64,000 nt of DNA from Hemiscyllium ocellatum (taxonomy: Eukaryota): contig NC_083433.1 of assembly GCF_020745735.1 (NCBI RefSeq), forward strand, positions 12,845,363-12,909,362. The letters are read 5' to 3'. The position numbers and the translations under genes were made by a program. The notes beneath the pieces were generated by a model, which saw only the letters and a list, made by a program, of their open reading frames with translations, was not told where the DNA came from and ran no database searches. This document shows, in pieces, positions 1,489-62,048 of this stretch; position 1 is the first letter of the stretch; every line of letters starts with the position of its first letter.

Positions 1489-4400
1489 CTAACTGCTGTC
1501 CTCCAGTGAGAGCCTGTCAAACAGGTACTCTCCCAGCCCATTCTCAGGAGCTCCCAGACGCTTCAGGTTGGTGATGTAGTCCCCATGTCGCTTGATGATC
1601 TCAACCTCCTCATCCAAATAGTGGGTCTCCAGGAAGTCTCAGATGGAACACAGGAATAGCACAGCTCATTACATTAGCACAATCCAAGACCTGTTTACAA
1701 TTCCCACTGCAAAACAGGCTGGGCCATATTGCTCCAGACAGGAAAGTCAAGCTAATGGCTGGATATTGTGCCAGGGAGGATGATAGCATTTCAGCTTCAG
1801 TTTCTTAACAGGAAACTGGTTGTATTGTGGTGTACAGTGATCATTCTACTGCAATGGTCCTGAATGGGGATTTAGTGGCCAATATCACTTCAGCATTCAC
1901 ACCAGATTACAATCCAAGTTCCTCCTTAACCTTATTGCTGAACAGTTGTAACATCAGTATGGATCTGGAGTGATCAATGTTACATCTGGTCCAAGTGTTG
2001 CATTATTGAATTTCAAACCCAAAGACCAACCAGTGAGGTGTTGCCCTGAGGATCTGGCTGTGATGAGAATGTGGTGAAGCTTACATGAGGGTCAGTCTGG
2101 GCAGTGGTGAGTTGGTGTAGATCCAGCAAACTCTGGTTCACATTCTTCTCCAGATCCAGGGCAACCTGCATTGCCTGCAGCCCATTACCCCACTCATCCC
2201 TCTCTGGCTTCTGAAACATGGAAACAAAGGACAGTTAAGGATCAGAATCAGAATCCTGACAGTGGGATGCAGTAGGACATTTAGCCCTTTTGTCCAAACC
2301 CACCCTCTGAAGAGTATCCCACTGACCCCACCCCATTCCTGTAATCTTATCTTCCCATGAAGAATGCATGTAGCTTGTGCATCCCTGGAAACTATGGGCA
2401 ACTTAGCATGACCAAACTGACCTGCACATCTTTGGACTAAGACTGAGCAGTTGCCAGAGACTGGAATTGGACCTGGGTCCCTGGCACAGTGCCATCCTCA
2501 AGTCTAGATGAAGGTTTGAGGAGAAAGGGATTGAGATGGTATTGGAGGAATTTTTGAGAGAAAAATGGTGTACCACCTGAGAATGGGGTGGCAGCTAGTC
2601 CAGTGACATTTCTGCATCTGGACAAATATTTCAAGTGACAGGGCATAGTGGCCTCAGGACAAAGTGCAGGTAGATGGGATGAGTGGAGTTTGGGGTTTGT
2701 TGGTCAGACCAAAGGGCCTGTGTTGATGCTTGACAGGGCAATGGAGGAGATCTTGGGGGGGGGGGGGGGTGGGGAAGAAGCTAATCAAAAAGCTTTTCAC
2801 TTCCCCTTCAGGATGTGCAAACCCTGTCACTGACTTGAAGCCACATCCCAACATACCCACCTTCACATCCTGGAGGAGGACTCTGCCTCCACACCGATTC
2901 TGGAATTTCAGCAGCTTCTCTGCATGTTCCTGCTTCTCCTGGGACTGAGCTTTGAAGAACTGGGAGAAATGGTGCAGGGCAACATCATCCTGGTCAAAGT
3001 ACGACATCTGAAAGAGAACCATTTCCATCCCATTAACTAGCATTGGCCTCAATTTAATTGAGAGAAGGAGCTAGTTTAGCCCTCAAAAATCAGACCAAGT
3101 ATTCAAGCAGCTGTTAAACTTGGTTCTCAACCATTTTAATATTGGGTAAAAACAATGACTGCTGCTCCTTGGATGCTGCCTGAACTGCTGTGCTCTTCAG
3201 CACCACTAATCCAGAACCATTTTAGTATTGTCCAATGAGCCAGCAGCTCCTTTAACTGGATGATCTGGAGCAACCTCAGCTTCTTCCTGGGACATGCAAA
3301 CAATGTTTTATTTTGGATTAAACATCTGCTCAGCAGGTCTGACAGATAAATGCTGAATTCATGTCTCTGCTCAGTAACCGCCATCAAAAAATTGGAAGAT
3401 ATTGAGATTGAATAGGCTTTGAGCAAGTTAAGGAAACTGAAGTGCAGGATATATTCAGGGTGGAGGAGCCCAAAACTAGAGGGCACATGATTAGATAAGG
3501 GGGAAGATGTAGCAGACCCAAGAGTCAGCTTTATGCAGAGGGTGGTGCATGTATGGAATGAGCTGCCAGAGGAAACTGGTAGAGGCTGGTGCAGTGACAG
3601 CAGTTAGTAGGCATCTGAATAGATTGGAAAGTGTTCAGAGGGGTATGGACTAAGTGGGACTACATTTAGGATATCTGGCTGACATGGCAAAGCTGATTGT
3701 AGAGTGTTTCTGGGCTGTACATTTCACCATCTGTTGAAATTTCAGTTGGTTCCACACAGAACATTTGAAGTTATAACCTTTAACAAGGTGAGGGTTCAGT
3801 TGGATGACAAGGAAAGCCACTGGAGTACTCAGTGCAGTCTACTCCATTCAACATTAACCAGAGGGTAATACCCAGTCACCAGGGCATTTTTCTGGATGGA
3901 AGTAGAGATACAAAACTATCAGAACACAGACAGTAGGCCATTCAGCCCTGAAGCCTGTTCTGCCAATGAGAAAGTAACCATGAGGCTGCTGCAAGGCACT
4001 ACATTGTTCCTTCAGGGCTAAAATGGATGTTGGACACTGCTGGCACTAAGTTAGTCAAGAGACAGTTTTCTGCAACATGTAGCTTGTTGGGATTGGATGT
4101 ACCATACACTATCTGTACAAGAGCATTCCTATCTTGAGAATGGAGGGGAAAATGAGAGAAAAGGGGCCCTGGGTGTTGGCTAAAGAAAGCCTGCCCAATG
4201 ACAGCCTTTGGATTGTTGCAGCAACAATTACTTGTGGTGCATTCAGACATCCAGAAACATGTCAGCAAGCAACTGAGTGGTTAGAAAGAGTAAAACATGA
4301 ACAAGCTCACTGCAGGAACGACCTAGTGTGACCCTAGAGACAGCCATTATCTATCACCAGATTGAAGTGTAACTGAACAGTGTTTGACTTAATCCAACAA

Positions 4401-5894
4401 GTTCAAACCATTTAAATCTACACCCATAACTGGCTCAAACATTTGAACCACCAAATTCACAAGTGAATGGTGAAACAATACTATCCTTTTGCAAGGTCAT
4501 TTTGATCTTTGTCTTTTTCAGGACAGGTTATAAAGGTGGAGGGGAGATATATCTGGATATAGCTCCTTTAAACAACAGCAGGAGAGAGTCCAGTTCAGGT
4601 TTTCATAGTATAACTTAGCCCCTTTTCACAGCAACAGTTTCTATGCTTCAACAGATATTTCTTGCCTGACTGAAATCAGTCTTCAAGAGTCAGATTTTGA
4701 ATGCATCATTGCAATGTCACAACTCTTTGCTAATGGTGTCAGTCAGGCTTTCAAATACTTAAGCTAAGTTCTGCCTTTTGTTTAAACCTACATTCTGTTT
4801 TGTAAGCAGCAGAGTGGATTGACCAGCTGCATCAGTCCCAGAATATCCACTAACCAACTGCTTTTAAAATTAGTGCATTATTGCTTATATGGGGACACAA
4901 CTCAGGTCAAAGTGGAAATGGGTGGTCTATTTTATTCTGGGATACTATCAAGTTAAACTAAACTAGCTCACCAATGAAAGTTGTACCCACTTCCAAACAG
5001 CTTTAGAGACTTCATTCTTATCACATGAGAGAGAACCTCTAAACAGAGGAGCCCAGAGTGTGATGAGTATTCTCCACATGTCTGGATGACAGCACTCAAC
5101 ATTCAGGAAGACACCATCCAGGATAAAACAGCCCACTTCATTGGTACTGCATTCTCCACTTATCAGTGAGGATTATCTAACAGGTACCCTGCAACATTTA
5201 TCAAACCCTTCCAGGAAGGGTAACACTTCAGCAGGGCAAATCACCACCTGGTGAAACAGGCCATTTTGTTTCCTATGCCTGCTTTGGGTGGATTAAGGCC
5301 TACTTGTGGATTCCAGTCACACCCTGGCCATGAATACTTCTGCTCAGCTAGAGTATCAATAAATACTACTAGAATTCCTTTCACAATGAGTTGTTATTTT
5401 TGATCAGAAAAAAGGCATAACAAAATAATGTCACATTACAGTGGTAGAATGGTGACCAGTGGACATTATTCCACTGGATGGTTGACCAAAATGGCATCTA
5501 AAAACAGCTCAATATCCCATTTTGACAACCCAACAGAAGAAATAGCAGTTACTACAAATCACAATCCTCAGTTGCAAGTTGATCCCAAGAACAATTCATC
5601 CTGCATACATCACTGAAGGCCAACTGGGGATTAGTTGTTTTACATCAGTATCATACACTGTTGTTGCTAAGAGCATTTAGCTTGAATAGATATTAAGGCA
5701 ACAGCCACAAAACAATCTACAAGAGCATCAAGTTGATTAGAAATAAGGAAGTTTACCTCATAAATGTATGTATAAATAGAGACAATACTCACCAAGGAGT
5801 GATAGAGATAGGAGGCAGTGAGCTCCAGGTTAATCTGCTTGTTGACAGCAGCTTCACAATCCTGGTGATAGTTTTGACAAACCTGGGAGGCCAT
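1489..5894 (-). pseudogene. Ferritin copy 1, probable pseudogene (exon-4 splice acceptor destroyed)
   Basis: Exons 5894-5793, 3007-2861, 2210-2085 and 1642-1489. The exon-4 acceptor TTCCAG|CTGTGTGAC has become TTCCAT-CTGAGAC (AG lost, 2 nt deleted). Also carries R->C (NRCGG) and L->H (RHGDY) changes. AATAAA at 1351-1356. Confidence 0.8.
3145..3214. mobile_element. 70-bp Penelope-like terminal remnant with 16-bp target-site duplication
   Basis: GGATGCTGCCTGAACTGCTGTGCTCTTCAGCACCAC resembles the PLE pLTR end. Flanked by AACCATTTTAATATTG (3129-3144) and AACCATTTTAGTATTG (3215-3230). Absent from the paralogous introns. Confidence 0.6.
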
Positions 5895-5984
5895 TTTGCA
5901 CTACCTTCCTCTCCAAACCAATTCACAGCCTAACAACAAACTTAATATCAGCACCAACTACACCTAAACCATCACACCCTTTGG

Positions 5985-6120
5985 ACTTTTATTTATACTC
6001 CAGCAGCAGCCCATCATTTTATTAAGCAGGAAATGACATCATCAGTGATGGCCAATCACTCTTGTTAATCAATCGATCAGCTGCCATGTCCAATCAGTGC
6101 AAATTGGGAATTGGATTCAG
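5985..6120 (-). promoter_or_regulatory. Ferritin copy 1 core promoter (TATA, ETS/CRE-AP1-like composite, CCAAT boxes)
   Basis: TATAAATAAAAG about 103 nt upstream of the ATG. On the + strand: CAGGAAATGACATCA, GGCCAATCA and TCCAATCAG. Conserved in all copies. Confidence 0.7.
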
Positions 6121-13222: not shown

Positions 13223-17898
<4,676 letters not shown>

Positions 17899-17989
17899 TC
17901 TGTGATGAATACTGCTTTAACTTTCTCCCCAAATCCCAATCACAAATTGAAGATTAACACCAAATGTACCTAAACAAACACTGCCTTTG

Positions 17990-18125
17990 GACTTTTATTT
18001 ATACTTCAGGAGTTGACCCTCAGTTTATTCAGCAGGAAATGACATCATCAGTGATGGCCAATCACTCTTGTTAGTCAATCCATCAGCTGCCATGTCCAAT
18101 CAGCACAGGATGGGAATTGGATCCA
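17990..18125 (-). promoter_or_regulatory. Ferritin copy 2 core promoter
   Basis: TATAAA at 18003-17998, CAGGAAATGACATCA and two CCAAT boxes. Confidence 0.7.
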
Positions 18126-18373
18126 GAAGCCAAACAGAATTGACAACTGGTTGATGATGTCATTGCTGATTGACTTTTGACCTGCTGCATAACTGCAAAT
18201 TCTGGAAGTGCATCTACCTGAAAATGAAAATAAAACATGCTCTAAAACTTGACTATTGCATCTGAGGTAGTTTATTATAAAGTAAAAAATGAGGTCTGCA
18301 GATGCTGGAGATCACAGCTGCAAATGTGTTGCTGGTCAAAGCACAGCAGGCCAGGCAGCATCTCAGGAACAGA

Positions 18374-18412
18374 GAATTCGACGTTTCGAGCATAAGCCCT
18401 TCATCAGGAATA
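18374..18412 (-). ncRNA. Minimal type I hammerhead ribozyme in Penelope pLTR
   Basis: AUUC-CUGAUGA-A-GGGC-UUAU-GCUC-GAAA-C-GUC-GAAU: complete catalytic core, 4-bp stem II and palindromic ACGU stem III, typical of PLE hammerheads. Confidence 0.85.
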
Positions 18413-18700
18413 AGAGAGAGAGCCAAGCAGGCTAAGATAAAAGGTAGGGAGGAGGGACTGGGGGAGGGGCGATGGAGGTGGGATAGGTGGAAGGAGGTCA
18501 AGGTGAGGGTGATAGGCCGGAGTGGGGTGGGGGCGGAGAGGTCAGGAAGAGGATTGCAGGTTAGGAGGGCGGTGCTGAGTTGAGAGAACCGACTGAGACA
18601 AGGTGGGGGGAGGGGAAATGAGGAAACTGGAGAAATCTGAATTCATACCTTGTGGTTGGAGGGTTCCCAGGCGGAAGATGAGGCGCTCCTCCTCCAGCCG

Positions 18701-20749
18701 TCATGTAGTTGTGTTCTGCCGGTGGAGGAGTCCAAGGACCTGCATGTCCTCGGTGGAGTGGGAGGGGGAGTTAAAGTGTTGAGCCACGGGGTGATTGGGG
18801 TGGTTGGTTCGGGCGGCCCGGAGGTGTTCTCTGAAGCGTTCCGCAAGTAAGCGGCCTGTCTCACCAATATAGAGGAGGCCACATCGGGTGCAGCGGATGC
18901 AATAGATGATGTGTGTGGAGGTACAGGTGAACTTGTGGCGGATATGGAAGGATCCCTTGGGGCCTTGGAGGGAAGTGAGTGTGGAGATGTGGGCGCAAGT
19001 TTTACATTTCCTGCGGTTGCAGGGGAAGGTGCCGGGGGTGGAGGTTGGGTTGGTGGGGGGTGTGGATCTGACAAGGGAGTCACGAAGGGAGTGGTCCTTG
19101 CGGAACGCTGATAGGGGAGGGGAGGGAAATATATCCTTGGTGGTGGGGTCCATTTGGAGGTGGCGGAAATGACGGTGGATGATACGTTGTATGCGGAGGT
19201 TGGTGGGGTGGTAGGTGAGAACCAGTGGGGTTCTGTCTTGGTGGCGGTTGGAGGAGCGGGGCTCAAGGGCGGAGGAGCGGGAAGTGGAGGAGATGCGGTG
19301 GAGGGCATCGTCGATCACGTCTGGGGGGAATCTGCGGTCCTTGAAGAAGGAGGCCATCTGGGCTGTGCGGTGTTGGAATTGATCCTCCTGGGAGCAGATG
19401 CGGCGGAGACGAAGGAATTGGGAATATGGGATGGCGTTTTTACAGGGGGCAGGGTGGGAGGAGGTGTAGTCCAGGTAGCTGTGGGAGTCAGTCGGTTTAT
19501 AATAGATGTCTGTGTTGAGTCGGTCGCCCGAGATAGAAATGGAAAGGTCTAGGAAGGGGAGGGAGGAGTCTGAGACAGTCCAGGTGAATTTCAGGTCGGG
19601 ATGGAAGGTGTTAGTAAAGTTGAAGAACTGTTCAACCTCCTCGTGGGAGCACGAGGCAGCGCCGATACAGTCATCGATGTAGCGGAGGAAAAGGTGGGGG
19701 GTGGTGCCAGTGTAGTTGCGGAAGATGGACTGTTCCACATATCCTACGAAGGGGCAGGCATAGCTGGGGCCCATGCGGGTGCCCATGGCAACTCCTTTAG
19801 TTTGGAGGAAGTGGGAGGATTGAAAAGAGAAGTTATTCAGGGTGAGGACCAGTTCAGTCAGTCGAAGGAGGGTGTCAGTGGAAGGGTACTGGTTAGTGCG
19901 GCGGGAAAGGAAGAAGCGGAGGGCTTTGAGTCCTTCGTGATGGGGGATGGAGGTGTACAGGGACTGGATGTCCATAGTGAAAATAAGGCATTGGGGACCG
20001 GGGAAGCGAAAATCCTGGAGGAGGTGGAGGGCGTGGGTGGTGTCCCGAACGTAGGTGGGGAGTTCTTGGACTAAAGGGGACAGGACCGTGTCGAGGTATT
20101 GGGAGATGAGTTCGGTGGGGCAGGAGCAGGCTGAGACAATGGGTCGGCCGGGGCAGGCAGGTTTGTGGATTTTGGGCAGGAGGTAGAAACGGGCGGTGCG
20201 GGGTTGTGGGACTATGAGGTTGGAGGCGGTGGATGGGAGATCCCCTGAGGTGATGAGGTCCTGGATGGTCTGGGAGATGATGGTTTGGTGGTGGGAGGTG
20301 GGGTCGTGGTCAAGGGGGCGATAAGAGGAGGCGTCCGCGAGCTGGCGTTTGGCTTCAGCGGTGTACAGGTCAGTGCGCCAAACTACCACCGCGCCTCCCT
20401 TGTCTGCGGGTTTGATGGTGAGGTTGGGATTGGAGCGGAGGGAGTGGAGGGCTGCACGTTCTGAGGGTGAGAGGTTGGAGTGGGTGAGAGGGGTGGACAG
20501 GTTGAGTCGGTTGATGTCACGGCGGCAGTTGGCTATAAAGAGGTCGAGGGCGGGTAGGAGGCCTGCACGGGGTGTCCAGGTGGATGGGGTGTGTTGGAGG
20601 CGGGAGAAGGGGTCGTCAGAGGGTGGGCGGGGTACTGTACTAATGCAGAGACCAAGCCCAGGCTGGACTCTGCTCCAAGCCAAGCATAGAAATACAAGTC
20701 TTACCAGAAAGCTCAAACTGTCATTGCTTAGGCTAGTCAGTAATTCCAT
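18701..20749 (-). CDS. Penelope-like reverse transcriptase + GIY-YIG endonuclease ORF (5'-truncated, premature stop)
   Basis: IKPADKGGAVVVW, FYLLPKIHK, GRPIVS, MDIQSLYTSIP, GVAMGTRMGPSYA, RYIDD, CKTC and IIYCIRCTRCGLLYIGETGR. TGA at 18701-18703 is followed in frame by RLEEERLIFRLGTLQPQGMN. The first ~38 aa come from non-PLE DNA. Confidence 0.93.
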   Translation of the reverse strand: MELLTSLSNDSLSFLVRLVFLCLAWSRVQPGLGLCISTVPRPPSDDPFSRLQHTPSTWTPRAGLLPALDLFIANCRRDINRLNLSTPLTHSNLSPSERAALHSLRSNPNLTIKPADKGGAVVVWRTDLYTAEAKRQLADASSYRPLDHDPTSHHQTIISQTIQDLITSGDLPSTASNLIVPQPRTARFYLLPKIHKPACPGRPIVSACSCPTELISQYLDTVLSPLVQELPTYVRDTTHALHLLQDFRFPGPQCLIFTMDIQSLYTSIPHHEGLKALRFFLSRRTNQYPSTDTLLRLTELVLTLNNFSFQSSHFLQTKGVAMGTRMGPSYACPFVGYVEQSIFRNYTGTTPHLFLRYIDDCIGAASCSHEEVEQFFNFTNTFHPDLKFTWTVSDSSLPFLDLSISISGDRLNTDIYYKPTDSHSYLDYTSSHPAPCKNAIPYSQFLRLRRICSQEDQFQHRTAQMASFFKDRRFPPDVIDDALHRISSTSRSSALEPRSSNRHQDRTPLVLTYHPTNLRIQRIIHRHFRHLQMDPTTKDIFPSPPLSAFRKDHSLRDSLVRSTPPTNPTSTPGTFPCNRRKCKTCAHISTLTSLQGPKGSFHIRHKFTCTSTHIIYCIRCTRCGLLYIGETGRLLAERFREHLRAARTNHPNHPVAQHFNSPSHSTEDMQVLGLLHRQNTTT

Positions 20750-21785
20750 TCCTATAAATGGAGCTAGTTCAAACCACCCAGTCTAAGCAAATAAGCCACT
20801 CCACCAATATAGGGGCAGGGGAGGAAAGAAAGAGGGTAGTGGTGCAGTGATAGCATCAGAGTTGAGAAACCCAGGTTTATTTTCCATTTACTAGATACAG
20901 GTGAAACATCTGAACTGATCAGTTAGAAGAGAGGGAGAAACATCAGTTACACCCAGAGATTGATATTACAACCAAACTCAGGGACAGTTAGCAAGTGTAT
21001 TAAGTCCAGCTGATATTAGACCCTTTAGGACACTTGTAACACTGATACTGTCCCTGGTCTAGGGACAGAGACCCAGGTTCAAGTCCCACCTGCTCCAGAT
21101 GTGAACAAAGAACATTACTATGCAGTATAGGCCTTCAGTGTTACATCAATCTGAAGCCCATCTAGCCTACACTATTCCATTTCATTTCATGGAAATGCCT
21201 ATCCAATGACTATTTAAATGCCCTTAAAATTTGGCAAGTCAACAACTGTTGCAAGCAATACATTCTACATCCCTACTACTGAACTACTTTAGACATCTTT
21301 CCTATATCTATTACCCTCCATTTAAATTTATAGCCCTTAATACTAGCCATCACCATCCAAGGTGGAAAGGCTCTGTCCAACCTCTCTAAATCACTTTTAT
21401 ATGTCTCAATTAAGCCATCTCAACCTTCTCCAAGAAGGAGAGCTTCAAGTCCCTCAGCCATTTCAAGACCTTCTCCCATACCAGGTTCTTCTCTGAACCC
21501 TTTATAAAACTTCCACATCCTTCCTATAACAGTGACCAGAACTGTACACAATACTCCAAGTGCAGCCACACCACAGTTTTGTACAACTAAAACATGTTGT
21601 GGCAACATCTGAGGAGTGGATTAATTAAAAGAACACACCCCATATCTATCCAAGTATAAGACTGACATCAATAGTTAAGACAGCCATGAAGTCTAAACAA
21701 GAAACTATTCAGGTCAAATCAAAAACAGAAACTTTAATTTTATAAAAAGAAAGGCTTTATTTGAAAAAGCAGAGACAAAACTTAC

Positions 21786-21887
21786 CGAAGACTGATAGAG
21801 ATAGGAGGCAGTGAGCTCGAGGTTAATCTGCTTGTTGACAGCAGCTTCACAATCCTGGTGATAGTTTTGACAAACCAGTGAGGCCAT
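21786..21887 (-). other. Orphan ferritin exon 1 (34 codons, intact ATG and GTAAG donor)
   Basis: [34 protein letters not shown]|gtaag. Flanks differ strongly from copies 1-6, and it has no exons 2-4 of its own. Confidence 0.92.
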
Positions 21888-21979
21888 TTTGTCAAAAGAA
21901 GCCTTATCCTGATTCCTATTTTCTTCCCCAAAAGCCCCACACACAATGCTCAATAACAGCTACCATTACCTTTTAGTGT

Positions 21980-22102
21980 TAAATTTATACTCTAGGAACA
22001 TAATCCTCATCTTTTCAAGCAGGAAATCACATAATCAGAGGTGACCAATCGTTTTTCTCAATGAGTTGAAGAGCTGCCATTTCCAGTTGGATTCCAATCA
22101 GT
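21980..22102 (-). promoter_or_regulatory. Promoter of the orphan ferritin exon
   Basis: TATAAA at 21989-21984 (102 nt from ATG), AGCAGGAAAT, CCAAT at 22045 and 22094, and AGCTGCCAT, in the same order as in the array promoters. Confidence 0.7.
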
Positions 22103-22874
22103 GCATCTGGACCCAAAATGATAAAGGAAGGGCTCATTTGATAGGCACCTCAACCATTATGGAATCCTTGATTAATCTTTGACCTTCACAAGCTCGGTTT
22201 CACGTCTCTACTTGGAAACAAGAACAAAAATAAAGTACATTATAAATCCAATTTTTATGTTTGGGTGAAGATAATAAGATAATCCTGCTGAGGGCCTGCA
22301 GAGCTACATTGATGTGTTACTCTGAGGGATTCTCTTTCCTGTCTTATCAATGGCAGTGTTGAAAACCCATTGGAAAATAGAGGCTTTGTTCTTAGAAAAT
22401 ATTTTCCTCTTGGTATCTTCAACTTTTTGCCCAACGTCAGATTCAACCCACACTGTTGTGACCTTAACTGCATATCAGACAAGGATCCAGGTCCTGAATT
22501 CACCCTAGTCAGAATGGGGACCAAACCCTGCAGTGCTTGCATCAGGTGCTGTGGCAGGTGCTCCAACCAACTGAGCCAACTGGCCCATGAAGGATTCTGA
22601 GTTGCTATGGTAACACACCTTTTCCCACATGTTGTAGCCTGGAACTATGGACCGTGATGGTAAAGGCTCCAATTTCTTTCCATCACACCTGCCGATAAGG
22701 AATCTGTCCTGCTCCTACCACCTGCTCTTGGAATGATTTGAAAAGATTTGCAAGTTTATATTTGGATTTCAATTCAATCCAGTGGCATATGAGTGTTAGC
22801 TGACTTCTGTGATGGGATTTAGAATTTACTTAGGTCAGTCTTTCTGGAACCATGGTCTTAACTAATATGTGTCA

Positions 22875-23388
22875 AAATGTGTGGTGCTGGAAAAGCACAG
22901 CTGGTCAGGCAGTATCCAAAGAGCAGGACAGTCAACGTTTCGAGCCAGGAATGTGGGGGAGGCCCAAGGGGGTTGAGAAATAAATGGGACGGGGATGGAG
23001 CCGGGGAAAGGTAGTTGGGAATGCGATAGGTAGATGGAGGTGGGTGTGATAGTGATAGATTGGAATGGAGAGTGGAGCAGATAGGTGGGAAGGAAGATGG
23101 GTGGATAGGACAGATCAAGAGGGTGGTGCCGAGTTGGAGGATTGGATCTGGGATAAGGTGGGGGGAGGGGAGATGAAGAAACTGGTGAAATCGACATTGA
23201 TCCCATGTGGTTAGAGGGTCCCAAGGCGTTCTTCCTCCAGGCGTCAGGTGGCTAGGATTTGACGATGGAAGAGTCTCAGGACTGGCATATCCTTGGTGAC
23301 GTGGGAGAGGAAGTTGAAGTGGTCAGCCACAGGGCAGCGGGGTTGTTTAGTGCCTGTGTCCCAGCATCTGCAGTCCTTACTTTCTCCT
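22875..23388 (-). mobile_element. Older Penelope-like 3' fragment with inverted tail and 17-bp TSD
   Basis: Homologous to 18320-18800. TSD TTAACTAATATGTGTCA at 22858-22874 and 23389-23405. Inverted tail AGCATCTGCAGTCCTTACTTT. Hammerhead core partly deleted. Confidence 0.8.
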
Positions 23389-23683
23389 TTAACTAATATG
23401 TGTCAGACGACAGCAAAGCCTCCTGAAGAGTAAATGGAAGTTTGTTTATTGTGGGTAATTAGAACAGGAGAGTAAACATTAAGTCATTAGCTTTAACAGA
23501 ATATAGGATGAGTACGTTTTTGTTTAAAGTTCAAAGGTTTTTGGGTTCAGTTGAGAGGAGATGCAAACCAAATGCAAATATATTCTTTTCTAGTAAAGGG
23601 AATTATTCAGAGCAGGTAAAGGAATAAGGTACCTCAGTTAAAGACTGAAGTTTGTGAAACTTCCAGACTAGGGTAGAATTATC

Positions 23684-23733
23684 TTTTTTTTTAAATTTCA
23701 AAAATATACTTTATTCATAAGATAATTTGATGG
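23684..23733 (-). mobile_element. 50-bp poly(A)-tailed 3' tip of the Tx1-like family
   Basis: Reverse complement CCATCAAATTATCTTATGAATAAAGTATATTTTTGAAATTT(A)n matches 318-356. Confidence 0.7.
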
Positions 23734-23771
23734 ATTCCTGATGAAGGGCTTATGCTCGAAACGTCGAATTC
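23732..23771 (+). ncRNA. Minimal type I hammerhead ribozyme in the inverted pLTR
   Basis: GGAUUC-CUGAUGA-AGGGCUUAUGCUC-GAAA-C-GUC-GAAUUC. Confidence 0.85.
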
Positions 23772-24083
23772 TCTATTCCTGAGATGCTGCCTGGCCTGCT
23801 GTGCTTTGACCAGCAACACATTTGCAGCTAGTTTATTATAAAGACATGCTCAACACAGATTTGCAGAATTCTGATTGTTCATTCATCTTCGGAATTTGTC
23901 TTCCTGTCTTTTGAATGACAGTGTTGGGAGTCCATTGAAAAATGGCGAGATTTTGTTGACATTAAACATTTGCCTCTTGCTTGACAGTGACAGTAATAAT
24001 GTGCTTTTGGGTCCTAGTGCAGGCAACTTTGTGGATTCATTCTAAATCTGCTGTGACCTCTTTGACTTTGGGTCTCTGGAAGC

Positions 24084-28135: not shown

Positions 28136-33038
<4,903 letters not shown>

Positions 33039-33130
33039 TCTGTGATGAATACTGTTTTAACTTTCTCCCCAAATCTCAATCACAAATTGAAGATTAACAC
33101 CAACTGTACCTAAACAAACACTGCCTTTGG

Positions 33131-37742: not shown

Positions 37743-42918
<5,176 letters not shown>

Positions 42919-43011
42919 TCTGTGAGAAATACTGCTTTTAGCTTTCACCCCAAAGCCCAATCACAAATTGAAGATTAACACCAAATGTACCTAAACAAAC
43001 AGTGCCTTTGA

Positions 43012-47930: not shown

Positions 47931-53012
<5,082 letters not shown>

Positions 53013-53104
53013 TATGTGATGAATACTGTTTTAACTTTCTCCCCAAATCCCAATCACAAATTGAAGATTAACACCAACTGTACCTAAACAAACACTGCCT
53101 TTGG

Positions 53105-57678: not shown

Positions 57679-61956
<4,278 letters not shown>

Positions 61957-62048
61957 TCTGGGACAACTACTGCTTTAACTTTCTCCCCAAATCCCAATCA
62001 CAAATTGAAGATTAACACCAACTGTACCTAAACAAACACTGCCTTTGG

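Follow-up and report, generated by a model that had tools for sequence, protein, structure and literature searches.

The ferritin array and its inserted block

The 64,000-nucleotide stretch of Hemiscyllium ocellatum DNA analyzed here (contig NC_083433.1, positions 12,845,363 to 12,909,362; hereafter the window) carries a tandem array of intron-containing ferritin genes. All members of the array lie on the minus strand with a unit spacing of about 9-12 kb, and one of them is preceded by a large block of inserted DNA that has the hallmarks of a Penelope-like element (PLE) and that holds the promoter and first exon of another ferritin gene. The six array copies of exon 1 are located at 5778-5898, 17781-17903, 32931-33043, 42801-42923, 52895-53017, and 61849-61960. 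The gene next to the insertion, which we call the resident ferritin gene, was delineated by promoter alignment and by comparison of the exon 1 copies. Its exon 1 and TATA box (18003-17997) occupy 17781-18003 on the minus strand, and both exon 2 (14616-14828) and exon 3 (13737-13964) are open.

The inserted block comprises 5,546 bp (18283-23828) and is located 265 bp upstream of the resident TATA box. It lies between two perfect 15-bp copies of a target-site duplication (TSD), TAGTTTATTATAAAG, each identified by exact match (left copy, 18268-18282; right copy, 23829-23843). This exact sequence occurs only twice in the window, and shuffled sequences are expected to yield 0.12 matches when up to two mismatches are allowed. 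The target is AT-rich, with 12 of the 15 TSD bases being A or T.

Comparison with the rest of the array supports a model where the block entered an intact site. The sequence TTGTTTATTATAAAG is found once in each of four other array units (33408, 43289, 53388, and 62326), and at each of these sites the equivalent of the left flank continues unbroken into the equivalent of the right flank. Thus, the block is an insertion into a previously continuous site. In addition, position 2 of the TSD is an A that is specific to the resident unit and is common to both copies around the block, indicating that the duplication was made from the unit's own sequence and not by exchange between units. An earlier note, prepared from the sequence alone, had described a 5.55-kb block with a perfect 15-bp TSD that landed about 270 bp upstream of a ferritin TATA box at a site empty in the other five units. 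The size, the duplication, and the distance stand as described, and so do four of the empty sites. The fifth unit, a divergent one at about 5.9 kb, has no recognizable copy of the 15-bp target site. This first unit of the array (5778-6092) is a divergent paralog (MASQ...YHSL).

The Penelope-like element

PLE sequences form both ends of the block, with their 3' ends outermost and facing outward. The long arm is on the minus strand and begins at the left TSD with a 33-nucleotide tail (18283-18315) that is absent from the other end of the block. The tail is followed by the terminal 96 nucleotides of the element (18316-18411), which correspond to the end of its pseudo-long terminal repeat (pLTR), and then by a 2.2-kb PLE body (18412-20631) that includes the 3' part of the element and a 5'-truncated open reading frame (ORF) for reverse transcriptase (RT) and a GIY-YIG domain. 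The short arm (23734-23828) is an inverted, plus-strand copy of the terminal 96 nucleotides without a tail, whose 3' end faces the right TSD and whose last base is shared with the first T of that TSD (23829). The terminal segment of the long arm is identical at 95 of 96 positions to the reverse complement of 23734-23829.

The PLE ORF (18701-20749, minus strand) carries a DKG motif (IKPADKGG) that is visible in the translation. Two domains score above their Pfam cut-offs, namely RVT_1 at residues 202-377 (31.4 bits versus a cut-off of 29.6, 2e-7) and GIY-YIG at residues 613-650 (23.3 bits versus 22.6, 8e-5). The neighbors of this ORF in a language-model protein atlas are animal proteins of about 730 amino acids that have an RVT_1/GIY-YIG architecture. 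A single in-frame stop is present at 18703-18701, where most genomic copies read a different letter, and AATAAA is not present on the PLE sense strand.

To place this copy within its family, we examined Logan contigs from public sequencing runs of the same species, covering samples S1, S2, and S3 (runs X1, X2, and X4, respectively) from two studies. Other PLE copies run on with common sequence beyond 20631 (11-27 contigs per run), so the copy in the block is 5'-truncated at this position. The summed contig depth of the family is ~1e6, versus ~10-60 for the host DNA enclosed in the block, and the observed/expected ratio of CpG dinucleotides is 0.68 for the PLE copy, which is not depleted, versus 0.16 for the enclosed DNA. 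The block was probably delivered by an endonuclease-containing PLE of the canonical type that is both abundant and recently active.

By inspection, the terminal repeat contains a predicted hammerhead core that includes CUGAUGA (23738-23744), a 4-bp helix II (GGGC/GCUC), GAAAC-GUC, a palindromic ACGU, and a helix I formed by UUC/GAA. Such a core fits the minimal hammerhead that metazoan PLEs are described as having (PMC4209133). No hammerhead family was matched when the block and the terminal repeat were scanned with Rfam, whose hammerhead models do not cover the minimal type that lacks helix III. In the contigs, other PLE copies are observed in which the 3' end plus GTG or GTGA is joined directly to 23766, which is the first base past the predicted hammerhead cleavage site. 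Such joints suggest that complementary DNAs (cDNAs) frequently terminate at the 5' ends of ribozyme-cut RNAs before jumping to a new template.

The inner boundary of the short arm, 23734, also recurs elsewhere in the genome. Head-to-head joints of the form 18411|23734 are found in 14-34 contigs per run and derive from other genomic copies. Because these perfect palindromes recur at the same positions, the 96-nucleotide arm is a standard unit of the stub insertions made by this PLE family. The earlier note had proposed a GIY-YIG Penelope element with 96-bp inverted pLTRs and a 33-nucleotide tail on one side only, and had taken the whole block to be the product of one insertion. Our data agree on each of these points, as the domains and the PLE-type ends identify the element, and the single TSD, the paralogous empty sites, the outward-facing 3' ends, and the one tail argue for a single PLE-type event.

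The captured ferritin segment

Between the two PLE arms lies a 3.1-kb passenger of host DNA (20632-23733) that has the same orientation as the long PLE arm and is directly contiguous with its body. Read on the minus strand, the block proceeds from the inverted stub through about 1.7 kb of upstream DNA, a promoter, exon 1, and about 1.15 kb of intron to the truncated PLE ORF, the pLTR, and the tail, which is the order that the earlier note had laid out and that the sequence confirms. We refer to the junction between intron and PLE body (20631/20632) as J1 and to the junction between upstream DNA and short arm (23733/23734) as J2.

The captured exon 1 (21786-21955, minus strand) is intact. It has a coding portion of 34 codons (21887-21786) that ends at a GTAAGT splice donor, and a 5' untranslated region of about 68 nucleotides, where the 5' end near 21955 is placed according to the position of the TATA box. 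The captured promoter (21956-22110, minus strand) was delimited by alignment with three array promoters. It has a TATAAAT (21989-21983), a pair of conserved ATTGG (inverted CCAAT) boxes, and further blocks that are common to the array promoters. Downstream of exon 1, a 1,154-nucleotide fragment of intron 1 (20632-21785, minus strand) directly abuts the truncated PLE at J1. The passenger thus keeps an unspliced genomic structure, in which promoter, exon 1 with its donor, and 1,154 nucleotides of intron are contiguous.

The captured upstream DNA (22111-23733, minus strand) contains a conserved block (22315-22412) that is colinear with that of the array and is located at nearly the same distance from exon 1 (423 bp, versus 421 bp in the array). 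It ends at J2 inside the 3' end of a retroposon (23684-23733). Other copies of this retroposon continue beyond 23733, which establishes J2 as a true breakpoint. The same high-copy retroposon 3' end, consisting of AATAAA followed by an A-run, is present in two copies in the window, the second being at 290-351.

The upstream DNA also carries an older, nested PLE stub (22875-23388, or 22858-23405 including its duplication; minus strand) that is flanked by a perfect 17-bp TSD, TTAACTAATATGTGTCA. The stub is about 75-79% similar to the 3' region of the young PLE and is its mirror image, with a long arm that has no tail and a short arm that is little more than tail; like the young element, it carries a tail of this kind at one end only. 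A further short PLE-related fragment (3150-3206) matches the nested stub's terminal repeat with 83% identity over 60 nucleotides.

Several degrees of similarity relate the passenger to the array. The captured exon 1 is 90-93% identical to the six array copies over most of its length, and reaches 95.9% over a shorter match of 97 nucleotides. The captured promoter is about 70-74% identical to the array promoters, and no similarity is detectable between the captured intron fragment and intron 1 of the array. This gradient indicates that the passenger comes from a diverged paralog. Accordingly, the earlier proposal that a different ferritin paralog supplied the segment is upheld: the segment is genomic DNA and derives from a separate ferritin gene that diverged long ago.

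We also considered the members of the array as donors, and no unit in the window is the source of the passenger. The divergent unit at 5.9 kb is ruled out on the grounds that its promoter and the captured promoter have only 74% identity. As a separate observation, the promoter of this divergent unit (5778-6092) is nearer to the captured promoter (74% over 324 nucleotides) than are the promoters of the other units.

Junctions in independent samples

J1 is bridged without mismatch in contigs from all three samples. In S1 (X1) and S2 (X2) the bridging contig is 493 nucleotides long and spans 20603-21095, whereas in S3 (X4) it spans 20614-21095. The S1 and S2 contigs reach 31 nucleotides into the PLE and are unbranched, and the S3 contig reaches 18 nucleotides. 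With a word size of 31, a contig that passes from unique sequence into a repeat should stop after 31 nucleotides, just as seen here. Hence, three samples from two studies contain J1 as a genuine junction.

Further passenger contigs cover 21204-21559, 21556-21720, 21847-22897, and 23363-23711, and match the window except at 22768. In total, about 2.1 kb of the passenger is reproduced in independent samples without a mismatch apart from this 5-nucleotide difference. At 22768 the window has two TTCAA units, whereas the contigs of the three samples have one; the cause is either a polymorphism in repeat length or a difference in assembly.

The unbranched state of J1 also bears on the structure of the donor. 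A second copy of the intron that continued differently would end the contig at J1, and the contigs run on, which speaks against a PLE-free copy. Every copy of the captured intron DNA in S1/X1 and S2/X2 would therefore carry a PLE at J1. A rough single-copy depth, taken from two incidental long contigs (one of 3,971 nucleotides), is 8.6 for X1 and 29.6 for X2. The passenger contigs have depths of 11.9-13.9 and 42.9-46.4, respectively, or about 1.5 times single-copy depth, which is a weak hint of a second passenger copy with the same J1.

For J2 and the right TSD junction, contig alignment recovered only paralogous empty-site contigs and other PLE copies. Contigs are simplified beside a repeat of such depth, which makes this outcome uninformative, and it is no evidence of misassembly. 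PLE repeats are known to disturb assemblies (PMC8557442), and an artifact of this kind, or two independent PLE insertions that flank a native segment, might be entertained given that the outer junctions are not recovered in short-read contigs. Such an explanation would have to accommodate a perfect 15-bp TSD with a unit-specific base, empty sites in four units, and the reproduction of J1 and about 2.1 kb of passenger in independent samples with no mismatch other than at 22768. Thus, we consider it the least probable of the explanations discussed here, and very improbable in absolute terms.

Sampled words were also compared with other datasets. Two RNA runs have at most 1 of 15 sampled words in common with the captured exon region, and for the related species (organisms B and C) the fraction of words in common is 0.09-0.16. 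No gene product on record corresponds to the chimeric ORF that spans J1.

Origin of the composite insertion

The arrangement of the block is best explained, in our view and with moderate confidence, by a single retrotransposition event with 5' transduction from a ferritin paralog that already carried a PLE. The PLE endonuclease would have cut both strands of the AT-rich site 265 bp upstream of the ferritin TATA box at positions 15 bp apart, which would account for the 15-bp TSD. Both free DNA ends would then have primed reverse transcription on the 3' regions of PLE RNA, and the use of two alternative start sites would leave the tail on one end only. The right end would have given the standard 96-nucleotide stub that stops at 23734. 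The left end would have copied a chimeric read-through RNA, comprising 2.35 kb of 5'-truncated PLE and then 3.1 kb of ferritin-paralog sequence, before the two cDNAs were joined at 23733/23734.

The upstream part of the proposed read-through RNA would have consisted of unspliced intron 1, exon 1, the promoter, and 1.7 kb of upstream DNA. In this model, the source PLE, already truncated, sat in sense orientation in intron 1 of the other ferritin paralog. Its template RNA would have begun well upstream, for example by read-through from the preceding unit in a tandem array of genes with the same orientation. Read-through from an upstream neighbor would explain the presence of normally untranscribed promoter DNA in the RNA.

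Several considerations weigh against 5' transduction as described above. The donor is not found within the 64-kb window, and both the PLE in the donor and the read-through RNA are deduced from the structure of the block. RNA that extends over 1.7 kb upstream of the promoter requires an upstream start. The two 96-nucleotide arms differ at one base, which calls for either two RNA molecules or a mutation acquired afterward. One or two contigs provide the depth baseline, and a duplication of the array unit would raise the depth equally. Finally, no contig is listed across J2 or either TSD junction, although this is uninformative beside a repeat with a depth of 1e6.

The earlier note had left the choice between 5' transduction and a template switch, and the unbranched J1 contigs narrow this choice in favor of the former. 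With a template switch, RT would have left the PLE RNA at 20631 during one PLE insertion and continued on RNA of a PLE-free ferritin paralog or on exposed DNA. The outer anatomy would be identical to that produced by 5' transduction, and the joints of other copies at the predicted ribozyme cleavage site point to frequent template jumps in this PLE family. However, an intact, near-identical donor should cause a branch at J1, and the X1 and X2 contigs are unbranched for 31 nucleotides into the PLE at a depth equal to that of the rest of the passenger. The passenger also includes 1.7 kb of upstream DNA that is not normally transcribed. Overall, we regard a template switch as unlikely.

Palindromic insertions offer another route in two steps, which also appears unlikely to us. 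An ordinary PLE insertion, with a stub head-to-head with a truncated copy, might later have broken at its palindromic center and been repaired with 3.1 kb of ferritin-paralog DNA, either by templated insertion, by gene conversion from another PLE-bearing locus, or by end-joining of a DNA fragment. Head-to-head 18411|23734 palindromes are common, as noted above, and palindromes are fragile. J2 coincides with the canonical stub boundary, and target and passenger are homologous regions in the same orientation. Nevertheless, this route needs an extra rare event exactly at the center that left no scar, and the unbranched J1 speaks against copying from an intact donor. In addition, the target flanks are not contiguous with homologous passenger sequence, contrary to what is expected of homology-driven repair, which we therefore ruled out as the source of the passenger.

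The recurrence of 23734 as a stub boundary could also mean that the passenger was carried on the short arm in a single event. The source would then be a 96-nucleotide stub located upstream of, and antisense to, a ferritin paralog, such that J2 is native and J1, which resembles a random 5' truncation, was formed at integration. An intron in such a donor would continue past J1 and create a branch, and none is seen in X1 or X2. This arrangement is thus considerably less probable than a template switch or later repair. A passenger carried on the long arm by 5' transduction agrees with the unbranched J1.

The finding that both donor and target are ferritin genes suggests a real bias, caused by spatial proximity, local reinsertion, or array read-through. 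Ferritin arrays can make up only a small part of the genome, and a donor drawn at random would seldom come from a ferritin 5' region. The earlier note had suggested local, in-cis copying within a gene cluster, which may have taken place.

Comparison with known systems

PLEs keep introns and are able to move intron-containing host genes (Arkhipova, Yushenova, and Rodriguez 2013, PMC3846280). In Adineta vaga, an NRPS (non-ribosomal peptide synthetase) gene and some non-coding sequences are found between PLE terminal repeats within one TSD, and there is an empty allelic site (PMC3846280). Therefore, PLE capture of host DNA with introns is already known in kind. In both the ferritin block and the Adineta vaga case, host DNA that retains its intron is enclosed by terminal repeats of a PLE, one of which is inverted, and both have a single TSD, an empty site, and a passenger from a multigene family. 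They differ in that the Adineta vaga insertion has the whole NRPS gene flanked by two direct pLTRs, lacks internal PLE sequence, and has an 8-bp TSD, whereas the ferritin block holds a promoter, exon 1, and a partial intron between a 96-nucleotide inverted stub and a 2.35-kb truncated PLE body, with a 15-bp TSD. Moreover, the host is a vertebrate, the empty sites are paralogous rather than allelic, and the arrangement of the ferritin block points to 5' transduction.

The published signature of PLE insertions is an inverted, 5'-truncated copy that adjoins the main copy on its 5' side, together with a tail of 30-40 bp that is often confined to one end (Craig et al. 2021, PMC8557442). A lizard PLE examined in vitro cleaves and extends both strands of its target; RT starts at two adjacent internal positions, with the sequence between them forming the tail (Frangieh et al. 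2024, PMC11167929). The ferritin block resembles canonical PLE insertions in its inverted 5'-truncated copy, one-end tail, AT-rich target, and putative hammerhead motif in the terminal repeat. In canonical insertions the inverted copy abuts the main copy, whereas 3.1 kb of host DNA lies between the two in the ferritin block.

The block also has parallels outside the PLE class. In mammals, 5' transduction by LINE-1 and SVA elements copies the upstream flank together with the element when transcription began upstream. As in those cases, the ferritin passenger is contiguous with the 5' side of the element and has the same orientation. The PLE belongs to a different endonuclease class (GIY-YIG), shows internal RT initiation, and would derive from a source element that was 5'-truncated; the passenger keeps its promoter and intron, and an inverted stub caps the 5' side, all of which is unlike LINE-1 and SVA. 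Twin priming by L1, which Ostertag and Kazazian are said to have described in 2001, reportedly involves priming of cDNA by both ends of a staggered break, with the inverted arms joined internally. The ferritin block likewise has inverted arms attributable to two primed ends and joined internally. However, twin priming creates an inversion within a single L1 element, whereas priming from both ends is the regular mode for PLEs and uses two defined start sites. A limited literature search found no description of 5' transduction by a PLE, which is no proof of novelty.

These comparisons make the locus a clean vertebrate example of a capture process documented so far in rotifers. The block is a clean natural record of PLE integration in a vertebrate, with both cut ends apparently serving as primers and two start sites in use, and such two-end priming agrees with the in vitro work on the lizard element. 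It also indicates that several kilobases of unspliced host DNA, including a promoter, can be moved by a PLE to another location. Such capture offers promoters and first exons a way of moving within gene families, and standard screens for retrocopies, which look for intron loss, would miss unspliced DNA carried in this way.

Possible consequences for the resident gene

Judging from the sequence, the insertion would shift the conserved upstream block of the resident ferritin gene to a position 5.56 kb farther from the promoter. It would also place a second intact promoter and exon 1 upstream of this gene in the same orientation. A transcript from the captured promoter could be spliced from the donor at 21786 to the resident exon 2 acceptor near 14800, and the predicted product of this splicing would have three changed residues among its first 34. 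The separation of the promoter from its upstream block, combined with the arrival of a second promoter and exon 1, constitutes a testable regulatory change.

A broader scenario is that PLE ribonucleoproteins use read-through RNA from tandem arrays as a template and reinsert the copies nearby, which would shuffle promoters and first exons among the ferritin paralogs of one cluster. The captured exon 1 would then serve as an alternative first exon that is spliced to the resident exon 2 about 7 kb downstream. We view this scenario as speculative and rather doubtful.

The array itself might vary in size between individuals. A contig at 18060-18238, whose sequence is common to five array units in the window, has an X2/X1 depth ratio of 5.2, versus 3.3-3.7 for single-copy and passenger contigs. 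This difference may reflect variation in ferritin array copy number between individuals.

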